Source: Epiperipatus broadwayi (lineage: Eukaryota > Animalia > Onychophora). From it: a stretch of DNA of 64,000 bases. The stretch is taken from assembly GCA_028023455.1 (NCBI GenBank), contig JAQFVV010000010.1, positions 1,364,001-1,428,000 on the forward strand. Reading direction: 5' to 3'. Within the stretch, counting starts at the first letter, position 1, and every line of letters starts with the position of its first letter. Positions 2,451 to 57,328 of this stretch are shown one piece after another. Both the position numbers and the translations under genes were made by a program. The notes under the pieces were generated by a model, which saw only the letters and a program-made list of their open reading frames with translations, did not search any database and was not told the origin of the DNA.

Positions 2451-4604
2451 TATCAAATCTAAAATACCATCATCACCAACCTTCAGAAAACACTAACTAC
2501 TCAGTATGAACCTGATGCTATGTTAAACTTTGAGATTATAAAAAATTATGTCTAAATTTGGCCAAAGTAACAAATCATTTAACTTTCCCATGCAAATTTA
2601 AAAGGATTATTCTTAAATGTTTGCAATTAAAACCTACATGAGATGTGAGAAGATTATTCCGAGTATATAAGAACCTATTAAGAAAAAGAACAAATGCTCA
2701 AAGATTTTCCAAGTATCAAACATTGCATTCCATTAGAAATGGGGAATGTTTTCAAAGAAATCAAGTTACTGATGAAGTTTTCACAATAGTTGTCCAGCTG
2801 TGAGAAGATCATATTCTAAATTACATGAAAAAATAAAGAAATGTTAAAATCTTGTAAATCTACACAGGTAAATCAAAAGCCATACTATAAAAATCCATCA
2901 ACTTCATCAGTTAAAAATCTTAGCTCTAAATTCCTACACATCTGAGTTATCTGTTCCTGAAAAATGTTTAAACTTTGCCATTTATTCTGTCTATTGACTC
3001 AATATTTGACATAATGGCAGCCACTGCAAAGCCACCCAAAAATTATGATGGAGTGTTAAGTGAACACATGAAAGACATCAAAAAGAGAAATCAAACATTT
3101 CATGTGATGAGAGGATGATATATACTTCTCCCTACTGACAAAGGTAACACTACAGTTTTGATGGACATAAATGATTATGATAACAAAATATAAGAACTCA
3201 TCTCAGCAGGCTAATACAAAAAAGTGACAAAAAAATCTAAATCCAATTACAGAGATAAAGTTACAAGCAGATATTTTAATGATTCAGAAAAAAAGGAAAT
3301 TAACACCATATTTCAGAAAAATCTCTCATCTTTATGGATTACCTAAAATTCATAAAGATAATGTTCCATTAAGACCTATTGTTAGATCTAGAAATTCATC
3401 ATGTCATAACATATCAAAATTTATTTTCAAAATTTTTAGTCTTTTAGCATATGGATTCAGAATTCTTTCATCAAAGTTAAGGAATGGCCATTCACTCAGT
3501 GGTTAACTGTTGCAGAGCAACACTTATTATGGCAGAATTTGAATCTAGAACCATAAATACTACTCCATTTCAACATAAAGTTTGGATTCACTATGTTAAT
3601 AATACATTTTCTGCATGGTCACATGGTCAAATACAGTTATAGACATTCTGAATGCACATCAATAACATCTCTTTCAATTAAATTCACAATGGAATCAGAA
3701 CAAGAATAAAAATTGAAAAGAAAGCATAATAATATATAACAAAAATTAATCTATTTGCATAGAATATGTTATTAAAAAGTTGTAATAATACACTTGTCTA
3801 ACAATAGGTCACAACACTAAAAAGAGTACAAGTGAAATAGAAGAAAGGATTGAAATGAAGATGTTAAATGCATTCTTAGATGTTCTTGTGACAAGATATC
3901 TTCATGTTAAAGCCAAAACAATAGTTTATAGAAAACCAACATTCTCTGGAAAATACTTAGCATATATATCCAATCACATCAGAATAACCAAATGTGGAAT
4001 TATCCTATCACCATGGAACAGAGCAAAGGAAGTTTGTTCAGAAACCAATGACTTGGAAAGAACAAACTCATGATGAATGATTATCTGTCAGCTGTCATCA
4101 CAAAATTTTAATAGACAACAAAAACAGACACCAAAAAAACAAACCAATTATTGGAAATATAGTGTAGCCATACATACCAGGAATAGCAGATAAATTAATG
4201 AAAATCTGCAATCATTATAACACTAGAACAGTTTTCATAAACCATACCACACTCTACAAAAACAAACTTGAATTGCCGAAAAACAAAACCTGCATGTATG
4301 AAATACCATGTAAATTTATAAGTAAGTATATTGGTAAGACAAGTCACCCTGCTGAAAAGCGATTGAAAAAACCCAAACTATTCTTTAGAAAAAAAAAACA
4401 GATGTATCTACAGTAGACAACCAGGTGTGTACTAACAAATATATGTTCAAATTACAAAATACAAATATATTGGATAAAGAGGAAATAAAACAGAGAAGAA
4501 AATACAAAGAAGCTACTTCTATGACAGTGGCAAATAATCTTATAAGTCAATCCAGAATCTCAAAGTCTCTAATTAATCCTGCTCTTAAGAAAAAGTATTA
4601 TAAG

Positions 4605-4915
4605 AAGAAAAAAGTGGAAGAATGAGGAGGATATGAACTGATTCTCATCAGTAATTACATGCAATTTTTACTGATTGTCAAGAACCTAAAGTTATAAGTT
4701 TAATTCCCATGCTAGCATTGTCACTAGTCAGGTCAGCAACATCTAAAAAAAAGAGTAGAGAAAAATACCACTCCAAATGTTGTGTAATTTACTAACCTGT
4801 GTTATGTATTTATGCATTGTTGCTAACAGTTGTTTGTATTTGGAAAAGTTTAAATAAATTTAAAATTTTCTAGACATTCAATATTTAATGATAAATGATG
4901 GAAATAATCCAATAT
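4605..4915 (+). repeat. 3' pseudo-LTR of Penelope copy
   Basis: Diverged direct repeat of 2085-2450, starting right after the endonuclease region. Confidence 0.7.
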
Positions 4916-5053
4916 ATCACATTTCACTTATATAACTCATTATTACCACAATAATTTTCAAATTCATGTGCAATTACAATAAATTACAACCATGATTGGA
5001 AAGTAGCACAGAGCTGAGTAAAGAATTAGCGAAGAAGCAAATTAATTACTCAC

Positions 5054-5101
5054 CGATTTCTTTTTTTTTTTTATGTTTGATAATTTTGTACTGGGTTTCA
5101 T
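5054..5101 (-). other. Possible short first exon of a host gene (MKPSTKLSNIKKKKKS followed by GTGAGT donor)
   Basis: Minus-strand ATG at 5101 and 16 open codons ending exactly at a consensus GTGAGT donor (5053-5048), in a locally CpG-richer, non-TE-looking stretch. No downstream exon identified. Confidence 0.22.
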
Positions 5102-6342
5102 TTCTTTTGTTTACTTGTGTAATATTTTATAGACTTTTTTTTTTTAATTTTCAATTAAATATCTATCCAGACAGTTATTATAAAAACAATGATAAATTTG
5201 ACAATTTTTTTTTACTAGGAATAAATAATGAAAGGTAGTCCGTCATTCAATAATTTTTAAGTTCTAAAAAATTAACCCATTATTATCCCAAATTCATTTA
5301 AAATTATCTCCCACTTCGCATTTCCTAATTAAACCACTATCACCTTTCGCTTTTACGATTTTATTTATGATAATTAACTTTTTAAACAAAGATAAAACTA
5401 GTTTGAAAAAGAGTAAAAAAAATGTTAGGAATGTAATAACTTCTTTGAGTATGGAAAAAATTGAAGAAAATCAACTTTTCTTGATCTTGACCTTTGACCA
5501 AAACGTTTTTGGAAATTCTAAACGATAACTTGGCAAATTGTCAATGCTAAATCACATTTTATTATAAAGATAAGGTGATTAGAATTAAAATATTTTTATT
5601 ATACTTCAAAAGTCTTTGGGCTTGCAATTTTTGTAATGATGTAGCAAAGATATGTATACTCAGTTAATCAGAATTATTTGTTATTATATACACTACTGTA
5701 AAATATAATTTTATCAGCTAAATATAAAACTTTTAACATTGAAAGAATATAATAAATTGAATCTTATTTATTATAAAGCTGATTATAAAATTATGTCCTG
5801 TAGAAGAATCTAAAATAACAGTATGGTGTTATATATCATGAATTTTTAATTTAGAGCATTTTCCCAAGATGATCATTATATAACTAGTCTGTTTTAATCA
5901 ATTCAACTGAACATCTAATATAATCAGTATATGAGTTTTTTAGCCTCAATCTAACCTTATTTAAATCCAACACGTGAATAATATATACAAATTAGGATTA
6001 TAAAAAAGATAGATATAGTAAAGCAAAATGAAATTCACACAAAAAACTAATGAAGAATAAAGATAATAAAAATGATATGAGCTAAAATAAATAAAAAATA
6101 GAAGAAATATTTTAAAAGATTTAATGAATGATTCTAAACTTGATTTATCATTGTCACAAAATGTGATCTGTTGAAACATACTACTTTGGAATCTAAGATT
6201 ATCTGGATATCACTTAACATAAATGAAAAAAAAATCCTATTGTTGGCAAAGTTAATTACAATTATTCAACTAGATTGACAAAATAGAGATTTCTATTTAT
6301 AGTTTTTTTTAAACATTTAGGCAGGAAAAGCAAGAGTAAAAT

Positions 6343-32888: not shown

Positions 32889-33972
32889 GTATAAAGTCAA
32901 TATCTTCATGATTAAAGTCCCCTGCTGCTTCACATATATGCGCAACCTAGTTGCACGAGTACACAAGGAATGGAGAAAAAGATATTTTCTTTTTTTCCGT
33001 CTGCTTAAATAATTTTTTGTCTTTTGGAGTAATCTGACTGATCATCTGTATCCGGGTGGAAGGTTCTTTATATTATCTACTAGGTTTTATTAACAGTAGT
33101 TCTTTCTAGAATCAATTGTTAATCTGTTATTGATAATCGAATTCCTATGAAATCAGATTTTTCTCATTGTTCAATTGTTTTAATTTATCCGTTTTATTAA
33201 CTAACTATTTTTAGACAGTAGTTTTAGTAACGTAGATTTAAACGCACATTTTACTAGTAATTAATAGATATTCTAATAATTGAAGTTTTACTTTGTGTAA
33301 ATAAATCCAAAATATAAATAAATCTTTTAAAATTAGTTTTATTTTTACTTAAAATAAATCTTTATAACTTTTTTACTTACTTTTTTATGGTATAGCATAT
33401 AAATAGCAGTAATTTAGCATAAGAAAAGATGATCATATGGTATTTAGTATATCTTTTTTTTATTTGCCTTTGAGATTTTTCATAACATTTATGAAAACAA
33501 TACAATAAAATAAAAAATTTACCCTCACAAAAACTGAAATTGCTTCCCTTTTGTCTTCATATTTTACTCTGCACAGAAAAATAAAAATGTCTATTAAAAA
33601 ACAATTTATAGTAATTGTGTTTATTTTATTAATTTCATTTTCAAATTTTTCATCTAACAATTGAAATATATTATCATAATGATTCCATATTAATTTAGAA
33701 TTTTTAATTGGTCTGGAACGTATATTCCACACAATATAATAGTTCAATGAAAAAAATGCTGTTTTGATATAAGCCATTGTTTTAAAATTGGGGATTTTCA
33801 AAGAAAAACTTCTAAAATAAGCAGTTTTTTTAAGAACCAGAACATATAAAAGATAAATATGTTGCAAGGAAATCAAGTCATATATCATATGACTTAATTT
33901 AAACTTGTATTACAAATGTTATATAATGAGTGTGCCAAATAGATCTTAACAAGCTTTTCAGAAGACCCATAT

Positions 33973-34010
33973 CCTCGGACCGGTTTATAGCTCTGGCTTT
34001 CATCAGTAAA
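33973..34010 (-). ncRNA. Minimal hammerhead motif, family A, decayed (G12>T, stem I eroded)
   Basis: TTTA CTGATGA A AGC CAGA GCT A TAAA CCGG TC CGAGG; palindromic ACCGGT in helix III. Confidence 0.7.
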
Positions 34011-34296
34011 GTGCTAGGATATTCAAGCATTAGATTTAAAATACCAGGTCAAGCCCAGCACTTTATCCAATGTTTAACTAATAAGTAGAAAATCTGGAAA
34101 TTTCAGACATCCGTATGTCTTCAAATCCAGCTATCTTATTTAAATAGCCATATGGGCTTAAGTCTTAAGAGCAATAACAATAATTGCAAGGAAATCAAGT
34201 CATATATCATGTGACTTAAGTTAATAAGCTTGTATTACAAATGTTACATGATGAGCATGCCAATAGCTCTTAGCAAGCTTTTCAAAATACCCATAT

Positions 34297-34338
34297 CCTT
34301 AGAAGACTGGTTTCTAGCTCTGGCATTCATCAGTGAGG
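34297..34338 (-). ncRNA. Minimal hammerhead motif, family A, core intact, helices eroded
   Basis: CCTCA CTGATGA ATGC CAGA GCTA GAAA CCAG TC TTCTAAGG. Confidence 0.7.
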
Positions 34339-34835
34339 CACTGTATATTCAAGCATTAAATTTAAAATATCAGGTTAAGCCAAGCACTTTATCCAATGTT
34401 TAACTATCAAGTAGAAAAATCTGAAATTTTCCGACAACCATATGTCCTCAAATCCAGTTATCTAACTTAAATAGCAATATGGGACTGAACTAAGTTCAGA
34501 TGCACTATATATTAAAAGCTTCAGCTGTATAAAATTGTCAAAGGCTTAAGAGCATTATATAACATTTGTAATACAAGCTTATTAAATTAAATCACGATAT
34601 ATGATTTTCTTGCAATTATTGTTATCAAGGCTTTGGCAATTTTATATTGCTAAAGCTATTAATATATGGAGTATCTGAACTTAGTTCAGTCCCATATGTC
34701 TATTTAAATTAGATAACTAAATTTGAAGACATATGGATGTCTGAAAATTTTAGATTTTCTACTTAATAGTTAAATATTGGATAAAATGCTTGGCTTGACC
34801 TGGTATTTTAAATCTAATGCTTGAATATCCTAGCA

Positions 34836-34876
34836 CCTCACTGACAAAAGCCAGAGCTAGAAACCAGTCCAATAGG
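34836..34876 (+). ncRNA. Minimal hammerhead motif, family A, decayed (G8>A)
   Basis: CCTCA CTGACAA A AGC CAGA GCT A GAAA CCAG TC CAATAGG. Confidence 0.65.
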
Positions 34877-43399: not shown

Positions 43400-44700
43400 T
43401 TATTGGTTTATTTAAAGCAAATATTAATATTACTAATTCTTCTATCTAGTGAAGCTAGTTATTAAATTTATCCACTATTTTTTCCCATGCAAATTTTATA
43501 AATACAATTCTTATAAATTATATGTATCAAATTTTGTTTTATAATGATTAATGTTTCATTGAAAGAGATATATACACATGTAAAGTTAAGTTTTAAATAA
43601 TAATAGACAGAATAAAGATACAACATTAACTGTACAGTAATAAAATATTTTTGATATAATAGAAACTTTATTATTTCAGCTAGATACTTTAAACTATACT
43701 TGATAATAATATAAGGTTTTAGCATAATATTCAAACACATGGGTGAGTGTGCATGAATGTTTTATGTGGTTGAATGTATTTTAAAATGAAATATTTTAAC
43801 AAATTTATTATAAGTAATAATTGGATTTATTCAGCATGATGGGAACTTTAAAGAAACCAGAAGAAAATGAAAAGAAAAAATAATTTAATATTTTAACAAT
43901 ATTAAATCATTTATTTTATAAAACAAGAATGTCTATTTATTGCATTTTAATTATTAATTAATGTAATCTGGTATTTAATATTTTGAAAGAATATTTGCCC
44001 AAAATTTTTAAAAAATGAAATCACAAATTTTGGCACTATAAGCTTAGAAAATTTCCAAATATCACCTGCTTCTTGTTTCTAAGCAATAGTGGCAGAATAT
44101 TCGTGTAAAAATCTAAAAAATGAAGAATTTTGGTAAAATTTATGATCTCATTCATCATATGTATGACAGGAATCTATAAATACACCTATGTGTTAAAAAA
44201 TTGTTTAGTCTTTAATTAAATTTTGTGCAGAAGGACTGCATAGGATTTAAATTCAAAATTAGCCATCTTGGCATCCTGCACTGCCTCTCTAATGGCAAAT
44301 GTTCCTATATAGTGTCCTGAATGAAGAAACTACATGTCTAACAGTGTATATCATTCAATAATGAATTTAAAAAGAATGATAGCCAAATAATTGAATTTAA
44401 CTATAAAAACTTTCAAGAGTGCTTCATGGAATGTTACATTTTATTTGAATTGCATTGTTTATTCATCTCTCCAAAACAGATATTATTTGCTTGGAATTTA
44501 TATTTGCTATATCAACATAAAGCTTCAAATGAGTATATGTGGTTTAATGGAATGAATTGCTTTATATTATATTTACAAACAAATGAATTGCTTTATGTTA
44601 TATTTACAAATAAACTACCTAAAGTTTTGGATATTAGTTTCAAACTAATGCATCCAGTGGATTAATATACTGTTTAATACTACAATAATCTAATATTATG
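43400..44700. repeat. Diverged repeat unit, copy 1
   Basis: 43440-43740 matches 49165-49446 plus 49920-49950; 44050-44380 matches 49960-50200 and 56010-56360. Confidence 0.7.
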
Positions 44701-48600: not shown

Positions 48601-49558
48601 TTTACATTTATTCTATAGTTTAAAATGGCTTATTTTCTATAAAAAACAACAACAAATTATTAGATGTAAGCATAACTAGGAAGTTGATATTTTGTAAAGA
48701 AGATTAAAAATTTATTGTATTGATAACGATGCATTTGGAGAAAATTAGATGAATAATTTAAGATAAATAAAATACTGTGCATTCCAGAATTATATGGTAA
48801 AAGTTTAAAATAATAACTCATTCATTAGAAACAATAATGTATATTATTAAAGAAAATGTTCCCCATTTCCCAAAAAAACAATTTATCAACTTTAATATTC
48901 AAAGGTCGATAAGTTTAAGATGTTAATATTATTATAGGCATTATGAACTTGATGCTACATTTATAAAATTATATAAGCTAAGAATCCCCCCTCCCCAGAA
49001 AAAAGTAAATGTAATAATATTTTTAATATCTAGATTAATAGTCACAACTATATACTGTATTCTAAAAAATTATTGGCTTATCAATAAAGCAAACAAATAT
49101 TATTGGTTATTACTATTATTAGTGTTGGAAATAAAATAATTGGAAGTAATATTAATATTATTATTTCTTCTACCTAGTAAAGCAAATTATTAAATTTACC
49201 CAAGATCTCTTTCCATGCAGATTTTATAAATACACAGGGACTTAAAAATTATATGCATCAAATTTTGCTTTATCATGATTAAAATTTCATTGAAAAAAAT
49301 ACATACATATGTAAAGTTAAGTTTGAAAAAATAATAGACAGAATAAAAGAATACAACATAAACTACAATAGGAATAAAATATTTAAAATTATTGTGGTAT
49401 ATTAATAACTTTATTATTTCAGTTAGACAATTTATACTTAATAGTATTGATAAAAAAATCAAGTCAGATGACCTAATTTTAATAAAGCTCGTATTTACAA
49501 ATGTTATATATAGAATAAGTTAAAAACAAACTCTTAACAAGCTTCAAAAATACCCTCA

Positions 49559-49600
49559 ACCTCAGACCGCGGTTTCTGCATCTAGCGTCATCAGTGAGGT
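49559..49600 (-). ncRNA. Minimal type I hammerhead ribozyme, core intact
   Basis: Exact reverse complement of 49811-49852. Confidence 0.85.
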
Positions 49601-49810
49601 GTTAGGGAATAAAAATACTAGAACTAGTCTAGCATTTTATCAATGCCTAACTATTGAGAAGAAAATCTGAAACCTTCAGACATTTAATGTCTGAAGGTTT
49701 CAGATTTTCTTCTCAATAGTTAGGCACTCATCTGAAGGTTTCAGATTTTCTTCTCAATAGTTAGGCATTGATAAAATGCTAGACTAGTTCTAGTATTTTT
49801 ATTCCCTAAC

Positions 49811-49852
49811 ACCTCACTGATGACGCTAGATGCAGAAACCGCGGTCTGAGGT
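49811..49852 (+). ncRNA. Minimal type I hammerhead ribozyme, core intact
   Basis: ACCTCA CTGATGA C GC TAGAT GC A GAAA C CGCG G TC TGAGGT: 6-bp helix I, complete CUGAUGA/GAAA/GUC core, palindrome ACCGCGGT in helix III. Predicted cleavage after C49846. Confidence 0.87.
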
Positions 49853-52669
49853 TGAGGGTATTTTTGAAGCTTGTTAAGAGTTTGTTTTTAACTTACTCTA
49901 TATATAATACTTAATAGTAATATAAAGTTTTAGCATAATATATAAACACATGTGATACAATCCTATTAACATATCTACATGTTTAAAATTGTATAATCTT
50001 TTTTATTAACAGATTGTGAATGAACTGTATTGGAACTAAATTTAAAGTTAGACATATTGGCATCTTGCAATAAAATGGTAATGGAGTAGAGAACCAGATA
50101 ATCATTTGCTTAATGGCAAATGTATCTTAAAATAGTCCTTAATAGAAAACTAAATATCTAACCATGTTCATCATCTTGTAATACACTTTAAATGGAATGA
50201 AATGTTAAAACTTGGATTTAAATATGAAAGTTGAACCTAGTTCGGGAATGGTACTTTTGTTTAAACCATGTTGCTCACTTATCTATTCTCCAAATATTTT
50301 TTTGATGTTTAATTACTACAACAGTCTAAAGTTTTCTGGATAAATACTTATGTATTGAACAATTATTATTAAAAATGAATTTTAACAGTATTGAATTTTA
50401 TCTTAGTCTGAAAATAAAACTTTTATTGGATAATTATTGTTTAAATACATTTTGTAAACTAATGAATTTATATTCATAAATATTGAGAGAAAAGTTATAA
50501 TTTATGAATGCTATCCCTTAAGAGATTAAAAACTATGACCCATACTTAGGAAATAAAACAACTTATTGTGATTCTCTGGGATAATTTTAACTCACTATTA
50601 GTGGATTAAAGGGATTATATATTTTATTCCACACTATGATTGTATTGTATTTTAAAGCTCAATCTTCATTATTAATTACTCTATTCTAAGGATTAAAATT
50701 TGTTTCACCAATCTATTAGGATTTTACCAGAATAAATATTTTGAACTTCTTAAGGTTGGATTAATTTTCAACTATAAAGATATAGTATATTTCTCATATT
50801 TTTTTAATTGTTATATCTATAGTTATCTTGTTCGGTGAAAGTTTTCCAAGGAACAAGGTATAATAAAATAATATACAGGTAGTATATGAAATGTACAATT
50901 ATAATTACATATAAATGTGTTATTGACTTCTTATACTACAGAGACTGGTTGTTAGTATTTAAAGTTAATTAATAATGGTTTATAATTAAGATATATTTAA
51001 TATTTAATTGATCTATTATTTTAATCCTGTTTCTACAATAAAAACTATCTAAAGCATATAATTTAAATATTATAAATATACCCTTATTTATCCACATGGC
51101 AACACTCAAGATTTTATAAAAATTATAATGCTTATTCAATTATACTTGTGACATTGATACTTGTATCACTGAGTTAAATTCCTGACAATATTTTATTATC
51201 ATTTTATTCATAATGTGAGCTTGATAAGACTCTTATGGAATGCTACCAGTTCCTATTGGAATCAGAATCATTAAAGCCATGTTTTAGAAACAATATTATA
51301 AGTTGGGTTAATGTTTTCCTCTTATATGAAATAACTACATTTAAATTCAGATACCTAAAAGAAATGTGTCTTATTATTTAATTAAAGATATGATAAAACA
51401 TTCTTTTGTTATTATTCATAAGTAAGTTCTTTGAATAGATCTTAATAATTCTCTTCAATAAATTGTATTGCTTTATATCATATCAAGTTATATCACACAT
51501 TCAGATATCACAAGAATTTTCATAATCACTGTAGAGAACTTGTTATTATTGTTATTTTGTTTATTTAAAATATTTTTTATTCTTTATTGTTAATAAGTTA
51601 ATTATCTGGTCTTTGTCTTTAATTAGGTAATACTCATCAACTACTAATTTTATAAATAAATATTTGTCACATGATTTTATAATTATTATGCATTATTTAA
51701 AAGGCTTACTGTTTTATGAGAGATGTTGTTCTATATTTTATACACTTACACCATCTTCATCTCAATATTTTGTTGGTTAAGATATAAATTGAGTATAATA
51801 AAATGTGCATTGTTATTTCATCATATCAATAATAATAATTTATAATTTTAAATTTTAAGAATAGTATTTATTATATTTTAATCTTATAACATTGACATAA
51901 CTTTAAACCAAATTTATATAATATGAAAGCTTAGAACAAACTTGCTAGCCCAAATATATGAATGTTATAGGATTTATTTATTCTTGGATAGTAGAACTCT
52001 GAGAAATTATTGTGATTAGTTATAAATACACATCTGTATAGTGCATCCTTAAAATAAATATTTGTTTATTATAAAGAATCTTGTAAAGTGACCATCCAAG
52101 TCTTTTAAACTGTTAAGCTCAACCTTATTTGATCGGTATATTTTTATCATATATTTTTAGTCAGTTACAATTTGGCATCGCAAACACATATATAATTAAA
52201 TTGATTATTAAAATTATAAAATTACATGCAGTTTCTTTCTTCAATTCAGTTAAAATTTTGATGTGACCTTAGATAATGATTATTTTATAATCCTTATAAT
52301 AATTAATGAACATAAAATTTAAATATTATCTTGGAACTTTCATAACTGCAATATAAGGTGTTTAATGTGTATATGTTTAAAAAGATATAGCATTCCATAT
52401 ATAAGTTATATTAAAAAAAATATTTATTAATGATAATACTAATTAATTTTATTGGTGCAGTCTATAAAATATTTGTTTCTAGGACAATCAAAGAGGATAG
52501 TCAAGAGGTAGATGTTTATGTAATATTCAGATTGATATTAAAAATTGTACTGCTTATTTACTTATTTATATTACAATTGTTTATTTATCTTATTTAAAGT
52601 ACAAGTTTTTACTAACATTTATCTCTAAGTATGATTAATACTACTGATAATTTTTTGGTGGATCTGAAA

Positions 52670-54800: not shown

Positions 54801-55574
54801 TAAGTTGATAATTTTAGCAATACTAATATAGTTAAAGTGTTTGTAATTTTAGACTAGAGTTCATAAAAACTTATTTTTAAAGGCCAAGAATTTTTTTTTT
54901 TGTTACGGAAGGACAAAATATAATGAAATTTAATATATGAATTGCCAATAATAATCATAATTTAAAAATATTTTATTGGTTTATAAATATTATTACTATT
55001 ATTTCTTATAACATCATTATTACCATTGCTGCAAATAACAATATTAAATTTATATTATTAATATTACTTTATATGAGAAATTATTAAACTAATCCATGAT
55101 GGTGTCTCATATATATTTTATAATTACAGTGCTTTTTAATATATGTATGAAATTTCTTTTTATCATGGTTTATATTTAGATTAAAATATTCATACTCATA
55201 AAATTAATTTTAAAACAGCAATACATAGAATAAAAAGGTATAATACTAACAATAATAATAAATTATATAAAAATAGTATCAGTATAGTAATAACATTATT
55301 ATTGTACATATATAAATAAAATTACAATGAATAATGACAGAAAGTTTTAACATAATATTTAAATATATATGTGTGTACAAATAGTTCTAGTTCTTAAATG
55401 TATCTAAATTTGAAAAGATATAATAACAAAATATTTAAATAAATTTATTAATATTGGCAATAATATATTGATTATAATGAAAACTTAAAAATAAAGTAAA
55501 ATCATTTATTTTAATATTTACAATATACATATTTGTTTGTAAAATAATATGTACTTTATTTTTATTAATTAATA

Positions 55575-55875
55575 TAATATATAGGGTATATGAGCACAGA
55601 CTTTCACACGACCCATCACTCTCCACACTATCTCATAACACTGATATATGTTGAAAAGATAAAAATCACCAATATGTAATAACAGAAATACACAGGCAGT
55701 AATCTGGACCAACTGATGATTGCTGGTTTAGCATGAAATATGTATATTGGTGATTATTTATCTTTTCAACATATATGTGTTCAAGTGTATCAGTGTTATG
55801 AGATAGTGTGGAGAGTGGTGGGTCGTGTGAAAGTCTGTGCTCATATACCCTATATATTACATATATAGACACAGG
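55575..55875. mobile_element. Fold-back hammerhead element, family B (superficially MITE-like)
   Basis: Inverted arms 55575-55675 and 55744-55859, with a hammerhead motif spanning the spacer and the start of the right arm. TSD not resolved. Confidence 0.72.
55708..55751 (+). ncRNA. Minimal type I hammerhead ribozyme, family B, near-intact
   Basis: ACCAA CTGATGA T TGCT GGTTT AGCA T GAAA TATGTA TA TTGGT: 5-bp helix I, intact core, 4-bp helix II, very short helix III. Predicted cleavage after A55746. Confidence 0.78.
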
Positions 55876-57328
55876 TATATAATTTTATGCCTGTGTGTTT
55901 CAGTTATTAATTAATATAGTAAAATATTTAAAATATTTTGAAATATTATTTTGTCATTTTAAAATAACTTCATTACAAATTCGGTGCTACAAATTCTTAC
56001 AACTTCTAAAGATCAGCTGCTTCATATTGATTCTGGCAGCAATGATAAAATTTTCTCATAAAATGCAGAAAGAGTTAAAAATTTTAAGAAAAAAATGATC
56101 TCATTCATTATGTATTGCAATCCCATAAATACATCTGTGTTCAAAATTGTTTAGTCTTCTTTATTAACAGATTGCATGTGAACTGAATTAGGCTTAAATT
56201 TAAAATTAGTATTATCGGCATCTTGCAATAAAATGATAATAAAGTAGAGAACCAGATAATCATTTGCCTTAATGACAAATGTTCTTTGAAACTGTCCTTA
56301 ATAGAGAACTAAATATCTAACCATCTTCATCATCTTGTAATGCATTTTAAATGGAATGAAATTATAAAACTAGGATTTAAATGAGAAAGTTGAAAGTAGT
56401 TCAGCAATACTACTTTTGTTTAAATCATATTGTTCACTTATCTACTCTCCAAATATTTTCTTGATGTTATAATTATTACCACAACTTATTTTTCTGGATA
56501 AACATCTACATATTGCACAATTATCGATAAAAATGAATTTTATCTAATAAATTTTTTCTTTGTCTGGAAAAAAAATTATATTAAATAATTACAGTTAAAA
56601 TGAATTTTTTAACTAATGGGATTTACCTTCATAAATATTTAGAGAAAAGTTATAATTTATGAATGTCATCCTTTAATAGATTAAGAACTATGTTCCATAC
56701 TTAGAAAATAAAACTTATTGAGATTCTCAGGGATAAATTTTAACTTACTATTGGTCAATTCAAAAAAGTATTTATTCCAAAACTAGTAAATAAAACAACT
56801 TAGTCTAAATTAATATATTTACATTAGTCTAATTTTGGAATATTTTAAACTCACTATTATTGGATGGTATTTAAATCTCAATCTTCATTATTAATTACTC
56901 TATTCTAAGGATTAAAATGTTTCACCCATTCATTAGGATTTTACAACTTAAAATGTTGAAAGATTTACTCATTTTCAAATATTTTCAAAGACTGTGCAAG
57001 AATAAATATTTTGAATTTTTTAAGACTTTGAATAAATTTTAAACTATAAGGATATATTATATTTCTCATATTTGTTTATCATATTTAGTTATCTTGTTCT
57101 GTGAAAGTTCTCATAAGAAGCAAGGTATAATAAAAAATGTAGATAGTATTTGAAATTTATGATTACAATTTAGTATAAATGTGTGTTATTGATTCTTTTT
57201 ATTATGGAAACTGATTGATATTTAAAGTTAATTAATAATGGTTTATAATTAAGATATATTTAACATTTTCTTTTATTGATCTATTATTTAAATCCTGTTT
57301 CTACAATAAAAATAAAAACTATCTAAAG

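Follow-up and report, generated by a model that had tools for sequence, protein, structure and literature searches.

The window analysed here is a 64,000-nucleotide stretch of the Epiperipatus broadwayi (Onychophora) genome assembly (contig JAQFVV010000010.1, positions 1,364,001 to 1,428,000, forward strand), and positions given below without further label refer to the whole of it. At 49447-49906 the window carries an insertion of 460 bases that is palindromic and contains a hammerhead-like ribozyme motif on either strand. This insertion is one ordinary truncated copy of a non-coding, hammerhead-carrying repeat that is present in thousands of copies in the genome and is referred to here as family A. 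The 369-bp repeat unit of the family was numbered U1-U369 in the ribozyme-sense orientation; its landmarks are a palindrome at U125-138, the core sequence CUGAUGA at U223-229, and a predicted cleavage site between U252 and U253. The features of the insertion and of its empty counterpart in the window are as follows.

43696-43708, no strand: empty paralogous target ATACTTGATAATA, in the 79%-identical paralogue at 43420-43741
49434-49446, no strand: left copy of the 13-bp target-site duplication, ATACTTAATAGTA, identical to 49907-49919
49447-49502, minus strand: one-sided tail of about 56 nt, from U369 back to U314, in the left arm only (U369 is the end of the left arm, U313 that of the right)
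49447-49691, minus strand: left arm, an antisense copy from U369 to U125, at 96% identity to the unit of locus L022
49559-49600, minus strand: hammerhead-like motif (helix I, CUGAUGA, helix II, GAAA, palindromic helix III, UC), from a pattern match and an exact-copy search
49679-49691, no strand: fold-back centre (T49685) and inner junction, within the unit palindrome, at which the arms abut by their 5' ends
49686-49730, plus strand: first sense segment, about U131-U173, ending in the filler CTCA (49727-49730); site of a proposed second template switch
49731-49906, plus strand: right arm, a sense copy from U137 to about U313 (the short end)
49811-49852, plus strand: hammerhead-like motif with predicted cleavage after C49846, from a pattern match; the predicted dimer fold is a double hammerhead
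49907-49919, no strand: right copy of the 13-bp target-site duplication

Anatomy of the insertion and its target

The insertion is real, young and cleanly delimited. Its inverted arms (49499-49680 and 49731-49912) are 182 nt long and 98% complementary. Within the element itself the arms come to about 176 bp and differ at a single position (49515 versus 49896), and the two further mismatches fall in a chance extension of the pairing into the target duplication. The symmetry centre, T49685, lies within GACATTTAATGTC, which is the 14-nt palindrome of the repeat unit itself, copied one base shorter. On the side of the right arm there is a 41-bp internal tandem duplication (49690-49730 followed by 49731-49771), the first copy of which ends in the 4-nt filler. 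The window copy is without 124 bp of the 369-bp unit, and each arm holds less than one unit. The whole is enclosed by the perfect 13-bp target duplication, and neither end of the insertion bears a poly(A) or a simple-repeat tail. The single mismatch between the arms and the perfect target duplication indicate that the insertion is young. An initial interpretation of this stretch, made without database searches and hereafter called the sequence-only reading, had described a recent insertion with near-perfect inverted arms of about 175 bp, a 13-bp target duplication, and an empty paralogous site near 43.7 kb, and each of these was found.

With the insertion and one copy of the duplication removed, the flanks align straight across the junction to the 43420-43741 paralogue, where the target is present once. 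A second paralogue of the flank lies at 55078-55371. The region around the insertion repeats about every 6 kb in the window (43420-43741, 49150-50600, and 55078-56752) at 69-82% identity, and it is because of this repetition that an empty paralogous site exists and that joints between short-read contigs can mimic an empty allele. Two such joints (49434>49928 and 49387>49909, in DNA runs X1 and X2) were considered as an empty allele and rejected: they lie off the duplication boundaries, share no letters across the joint, and were read as the flank paralogues at 43.7 kb and 55 kb. An insertion of another kind, about 738 bp long (55372-56109), lies in the 55-kb paralogue at a distance of 46 bp from the position of the family A target. 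This second insertion has inverted arms (55575-55875) like those of a miniature inverted-repeat transposable element (MITE), around a hammerhead-like motif, CUGAUGA-UUGCU...AGCAU-GAAA, with U.U at the base of helix II.

The read data consist of Logan short-read contigs, and runs X1 and X2 are possibly from the assembled sample. Both junctions between flank and insertion are reproduced without differences, over 49319-49471 in X2 and over 49884-50066 in X1, in contigs that extend just 23-25 nt into the repeat. Most family A contigs run past 49687 into the 124-bp segment that is missing from the window copy, which confirms that the fold-back is specific to this copy. Family A contigs with about 96% identity to 49453-49687, one of them within a 1,289-nt contig, were also observed in run X6, which is labelled as a different organism; family A is thus common to at least two species labels.

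Family A, its sister families and their geometry

Genome-wide searches refer to the 5.6-Gb E. broadwayi assembly. The right arm gave at least 1,743 candidate matches, the best of them at 97-99% identity, and at other loci family A forms head-to-tail arrays with a 369-bp period. The same spacing (369-370 bp) was seen in a genome-wide search with a hammerhead pattern in which helices II and III were left free. This pattern gave at least 3,864 matches, against none for the reversed control, so the motif is not a product of chance. The unit has a GC content of 32%, and its longest open frame is no longer than 48 amino acids. The window variant, with AGAUGC in helix II, represents a minor lineage of the family, with 36 exact copies of its 42-nt motif compared with 2,200 for the dominant variant, AGAGGC.

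Type I hammerheads of animals sit in tandem retrozymes of 170-400 nt that lack long terminal repeats (non-LTR retrozymes; Cervera and de la Pena 2020, PMC7229834). Family A resembles these metazoan retrozymes (PMC7229834) in being non-coding and low in GC, and in its head-to-tail units, which at 369 nt fall within that published range and within the interval of about 150-450 bp by which such repeats are recognized. Each unit carries one type I hammerhead, with a 6-bp helix I and a helix III of 1-2 bp capped by a palindromic loop, and the insertions are dispersed, with target duplications that exceed 4 bp (11-14 bp at 15 or more sampled loci). Two differences are evident. Helix II of family A has 2-3 bp with C.A at its base, the nearest published ribozyme, HHR_Amex2, having U.U, and more than half of the family A insertions, known here from DNA alone, are head-to-head composites and not pure tandems.

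The head-to-head arrangement has one orientation throughout. Among 25 independent family A loci that were mapped onto the unit, 18 had an antisense copy followed by a sense copy, and the opposite order was not seen. The first 100 matches of the genome-wide pattern search form 40 clusters, of which 21 run from minus to plus and none from plus to minus; the others are seven single-orientation arrays and 12 singletons, and a separate pattern search gave the same picture. Were both orders equally likely, a result of 21 versus 0 would have a probability of about 5e-7. In every one of the 18 composites, one outer end lies at U312-325 and the other at U364-U25, and one end is always extended by about 50-60 nt (49447-49502 in the window). 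The inner junctions vary, with seven arm ends at the palindrome (U125-129), including those of the window and of locus L023. The target duplications enclose whole composites, which means that each composite represents a single integration event. The sequence-only reading had treated the fold-back as a special event and had proposed a genome-wide search for copies of the same geometry. Such copies are abundant, as the sampled loci and clusters attest, and the antisense-then-sense layout is found also in a coding Penelope-like element (PLE) of this genome and in the literature. Head-to-head arms are therefore normal for family A and for coding PLEs, and the fold-back in the window is not a special event.

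The genome harbours three or more related hammerhead families, ranging from a canonical to an eroded helix II, and all have a PLE insertion footprint. Family B, which is older than family A, occurs in the window at 33870-34865 as two antisense units followed by one sense unit, and is 70-76% identical to the unit of family A. For family B the genome gave at least 3,551 candidate matches, at about 85% identity, and the family B motifs are decayed, with a helix II of AGC/GCU that has a mismatch at its base and with CCGG as helix III. Family C (for example C2:19924606-19927485), with units spaced about 415 bp apart, gave about 870 pattern matches and likewise consists of antisense runs followed by sense runs. 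Its motif, UCCUCA-CUGAUGA-GAGC-CAUA-GCUC-GAAA-CCGG-UC-UGGGGA, is fully canonical, with a 4-bp helix II (GAGC/GCUC) that includes G10.1-C11.1.

The hammerhead motif and the predicted hairpin

The motif on each strand of the insertion reads ACCUCA-CUGAUGA-CGCUAGAUGCA-GAAA-CCGCGG-UC-UGAGGU (49811-49852 on the plus strand and 49600-49559 on the minus strand), exactly as it had been written in the sequence-only reading. Cleavage is predicted 3' of C49846 on the plus strand; on the minus strand it is predicted 3' of the C opposite G49565. On both strands CUGAUGA, GAAA and UC occur in the correct order and spacing, and the conserved type I core (C3 U4 G5 A6 N7 G8 A9, G12 A13 A14, A15.1-U16.1, and H17) is present. 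Helix I, which is open-ended, consists of 6 bp (ACCUCA/UGAGGU), an internal loop, and a 4-bp closing stem (CCCU/AGGG). Helix III, ACCGCGGU, is self-complementary, and because it is palindromic the hammerhead should act as a dimer. Cofolding predicts a double hammerhead in which the two molecules share an 8-bp helix III, and this dimer is more stable than a pair of monomers by 10 kcal/mol.

Helix II departs from the type I consensus, in which about 4 bp begin with G10.1-C11.1 directly after A9. In the window motif C.A stands next to the core, followed by G-C, C-G and then U.U, so that two G-C pairs are the only ones formed; the master variant AGAGGC has U.G where the window has U.U. The window helix II is weaker than that of the master variant and much weaker than that of family C. 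Two earlier descriptions of these ribozymes, as minimal and as intact, did not hold up. The 6-bp helix I with its closing stem and the short palindromic helix III are of the retrozyme type, and the two G-C pairs of helix II are flanked by mismatches. From the sequences compared, we read the motif as probably belonging to a true hammerhead lineage whose helix II has eroded progressively, the window version appearing to be the weakest.

Published ribozymes offer partial parallels. The axolotl HHR_Amex2 has a mismatch at the base of helix II, and its cleavage, weak in the monomer, improves on dimerisation (PMC7229834). Hammerheads of PLEs carry an extra nucleotide after A9 (PMC4209133), and the window motif resembles the minimal hammerhead ribozyme (min-HHR) of these elements in having an unpaired nucleotide after A9, palindromic positions 15.2-16.2 and loop 3, and what looks like a dimer-dependent design. 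The PLE min-HHR combines a helix II of 6-8 bp with a short helix I and practically lacks helix III, in contrast with the short helix II and the long helix I with its closing stem in the window. Covariation between families A and C gives a weak positive signal. Two compensatory changes (A-U to U-A and C-G to U-A) and several wobble changes are seen across helix I and the closing stem, where 85% of the cells pair in five sequences, compared with 36-58% when the partners are slid. Helix III is palindromic in both families (CCGCGG versus CCGG). Helix II may keep its pairing potential through different nucleotides in A and C, a suggestive reading that hinges on the placement of a one-base gap.

Each strand of the insertion has one sense motif facing its perfect antisense, so that RNA transcribed from it in either direction would fold back into a nearly perfect duplex over about 176 bp. 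For this hairpin the predicted minimum free energies on the plus and minus strands are -321 and -331 kcal/mol, respectively, and forcing the hammerhead helices I and II to form within it is calculated to cost 81 kcal/mol. These predictions agree with the earlier proposal that a hairpin transcript would mask the ribozyme. Given the duplex, and given a single sense motif where a dimer would be needed, self-cleavage would not be expected from the window copy. Sub-threshold matches of Rfam microRNA (miRNA) and small nucleolar RNA models to the 551 nt around the motifs were set aside as a generic response to a long hairpin, far below the gathering scores.

Coding Penelope-like elements and the proposed route of integration

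Intact elements that encode both a reverse transcriptase and a GIY-YIG endonuclease are present in the same genome, in which at least 10,242 GIY-YIG candidates were found. At locus L061 two 3,135-bp units lie in tandem, with 901-amino-acid open reading frames (ORFs) that have reverse transcriptase (YVDD) and GIY-YIG motifs, and a protein atlas places the ORF among RVT_1/HTH_animal/GIY-YIG clusters. A Pfam scan of the 901-amino-acid ORF (3301-6003) at E<=0.01 returned no family, probably as a result of its extreme K/N/I (AT) bias; in the genome search the GIY-YIG model matched the same DNA at 39 bits. Upstream the L061 array has an inverted 5'-truncated copy, with a 10-bp target duplication, GAATTGTATT, and its tail is one-sided, one end reaching about 130 bp further into the unit than the other. 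At nearly all of the sampled coding-PLE loci (L031-L064), a candidate min-HHR of the form UUGA(A/U)AA-N-[6-7-bp helix II]-GAAACGUU lies a few hundred bases past the nuclease domain (for example L061:6303-6350). This candidate has the rare U3-A8 core and helices I and II that covary among the PLE families, and it fits the min-HHR with U3-A8 core covariation of Cercyon from Schistosoma (PMC4209133). The short insertion end of L061 lies 8 nt past the predicted cut of this ribozyme. At the edge of another PLE locus (L063:1-103) a diverged family A copy of about 85% identity was observed, with an inversion junction near U226/U240; this copy, unrelated to the PLE, was the one match to the unit in the search for a partner among the PLE loci.

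Published PLE insertions comprise partial tandems preceded on the 5' side by a 5'-truncated copy in inverted orientation, and just one of their ends bears a tail (Craig et al. 2021, PMC8557442). Family A shares with PLE insertions (PMC8557442; Arkhipova 2006) the tandems, the single target duplication, the inverted 5'-truncated copy adjoining a direct copy with 3' ends outward, in the window as at 18 of the 25 sampled loci, and the extension of one end, which is common to the window, every composite and L061. It differs in having no ORF and in a tail of about 50-60 nt, compared with 30-40 bp. Paired hammerheads on opposite strands, 100-700 bp apart, have been described in Schistosoma (Cervera and de la Pena 2014, PMC4209133), and a preprint argues that retrozymes derive from the pseudo-long terminal repeats (pLTRs) of PLEs (bioRxiv 10.64898/2026.07.22.740005). 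Since its footprint is that of published PLE insertions and of the L061 layout, the window insertion, a non-LTR retrozyme with a Penelope-type footprint, belongs to a known class and was made in a known way. Going by this footprint, PLE machinery is the most likely mobiliser.

We consider it likely that the insertion arose through one PLE-type integration of a truncated family A non-LTR retrozyme, which left a head-to-head fold-back in which the ribozyme is a passenger and is masked. In the proposed scheme a PLE reverse transcriptase and GIY-YIG endonuclease would act in trans on an AT-rich target, where staggered nicks 13 bp apart would provide two 3'-OH primers. Each primer would be extended into a complementary DNA (cDNA), with the 3' region of a multimeric or circular sense-strand RNA of the retrozyme as template. 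One cDNA would start near U313, giving the short end, and the other near U369, giving the long end, and these unequal starts would account for the one-sided 56-nt tail. The cDNAs would run toward the 5' side of the RNA and be joined by a template switch at the 14-nt palindrome of the unit (U125-138), and a second small slip would produce the 41-bp duplication. This would leave two head-to-head arms folded back on each other and enclosed by a 13-bp target duplication. The hammerhead would be carried along as a passenger, descended from a canonical type I ribozyme suited to dimeric action through its palindromic helix III, with helix II presumably eroded to two base pairs in the window lineage.

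Other origins were weighed against this integration. Classical twin priming by a LINE-type (long interspersed nuclear element, non-PLE) reverse transcriptase, as in L1 5' inversions, places an inverted 5' segment beside a direct 3' segment within one target duplication of 7-20 bp. It would yield much of the observed layout, and the failure to find a PLE partner by sequence among 34 loci is in its favour. We nevertheless judge it unlikely, as poly(A) and simple-repeat tails are absent from both ends, inverted insertions make up more than half of the total, the outer ends fall at two fixed unit positions, and a coding PLE, of a group extremely abundant in this genome, has the exact layout including the one-sided tail. 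Near-perfect inverted arms within a direct duplication would also suit a MITE or foldback DNA transposon, with the arms of about 176 bp as its terminal inverted repeats. Elements of that kind are recognized by equivalent terminal repeats and a target duplication of fixed length, whereas the termini here are non-equivalent (a 56-nt tail at one end), arm lengths and inner junctions vary by locus, and the target duplications range over 11-14 bp. The 369-bp head-to-tail arrays made by the same sequence already contradict such a transposon, and we hold this origin to be highly improbable.

We attach as little probability to the palindrome being an artefact of assembly or of long-read fold-back. For an artefact speak the lack of a contig across the centre among those listed, and the chance that the DNA runs come from the assembled sample itself. 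An artefact would hardly carry a perfect 13-bp target duplication, an asymmetric tail, and a 41-bp duplication with filler in one arm only, and the short-read contigs reproduce both flank junctions. Dozens of loci moreover show the geometry, every one flanked by a target duplication of its own, and among them are junctions centred on the palindrome (U126/U129 at L023). It was also considered that the locus might have been co-opted as a hairpin-RNA gene, yielding endogenous small interfering RNAs (siRNAs) or miRNA-like products, and kept for that function. The predicted hairpin is extremely stable, and plant and animal miRNA-precursor models give sub-threshold matches to it, merely from its hairpin shape. 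Every Rfam match is far below its gathering score, however, and the locus is one among thousands of copies of the same shape and so young that conservation cannot be judged. Co-option appears improbable, somewhat more so than LINE-type twin priming.

Several results weigh against the proposed PLE-type integration of a hammerhead-bearing retrozyme. The family A unit shared no sequence in BLAST comparisons with 34 PLE loci (30 chosen by GIY-YIG and four longer ones, out of the candidates noted above), so a 3' region or pLTR in common with an autonomous PLE was not seen in this sample, and the coding PLEs carry a different type of hammerhead, the U3-A8 min-HHR. On both counts none of the sampled elements can be named as the mobiliser. 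The suggestion of a non-autonomous, PLE-mobilised insertion stands as regards the non-coding sequence and the footprint, with its inverted copy and one-sided tail, and finds no PLE of matching sequence among those loci. Rfam hammerhead models, which had been proposed as a check, gave no match at the gathering score in the window, and none at E<=10 either on the 551 nt around the motifs or on the L028 tandem array. In the five sequences compared, covariation did not exceed the shuffle control, and the helix I and II covariation that had been anticipated is seen weakly, in the two compensatory changes of helix I and its closing stem. The cleavage site at U252/253 coincides with neither outer end (U313, U369) nor with any of 36 sampled inner junction ends, and the footprints consequently say nothing about cleavage in vivo. 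The read check for a fold-back artefact came out well at both flank junctions, which are exact in the X1 and X2 contigs, and less so at the palindrome centre, which is spanned by none of the Logan contigs listed. Run X5, taken as RNA only by guess, covers the repeat and leaves the flanks empty; a shallow DNA run would fit this equally, and X5 was not used regarding transcription.

A single locus of this kind carries little weight. The window insertion is of use as a clean young example in which both template switches can be read at base resolution, and the series of ribozyme variants across the families is the more useful by-product for those who work on retrozymes and PLEs. In transformed strains of D. 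melanogaster, siRNAs match those parts of rearranged Penelope copies that are inverted (PMC3681739). Like those inverted repeats, head-to-head copies of family A that result from integration would give double-stranded RNA if transcribed; unlike the coding Penelope of Drosophila, the window element is a non-coding retrozyme, known here from DNA alone. More than half of the insertions of family A and its sister families may in this way be born as near-perfect hairpins. By a speculative extension, which we regard as doubtful, PLE integration would seed thousands of hairpin-RNA loci, from which small RNAs would police the retrozymes and their circular RNAs, making of the repeat a self-limiting parasite whose hammerhead is silenced structurally. 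Connected with this is the prospect that the window lineage, with its 2-bp helix II, goes on spreading, in which case ribozyme catalysis would be dispensable for mobilisation. The three families, together with the U3-A8 type of the PLEs, would allow the part played by ribozyme strength in mobilisation, and by hairpin-born copies in small-RNA silencing, to be tested.

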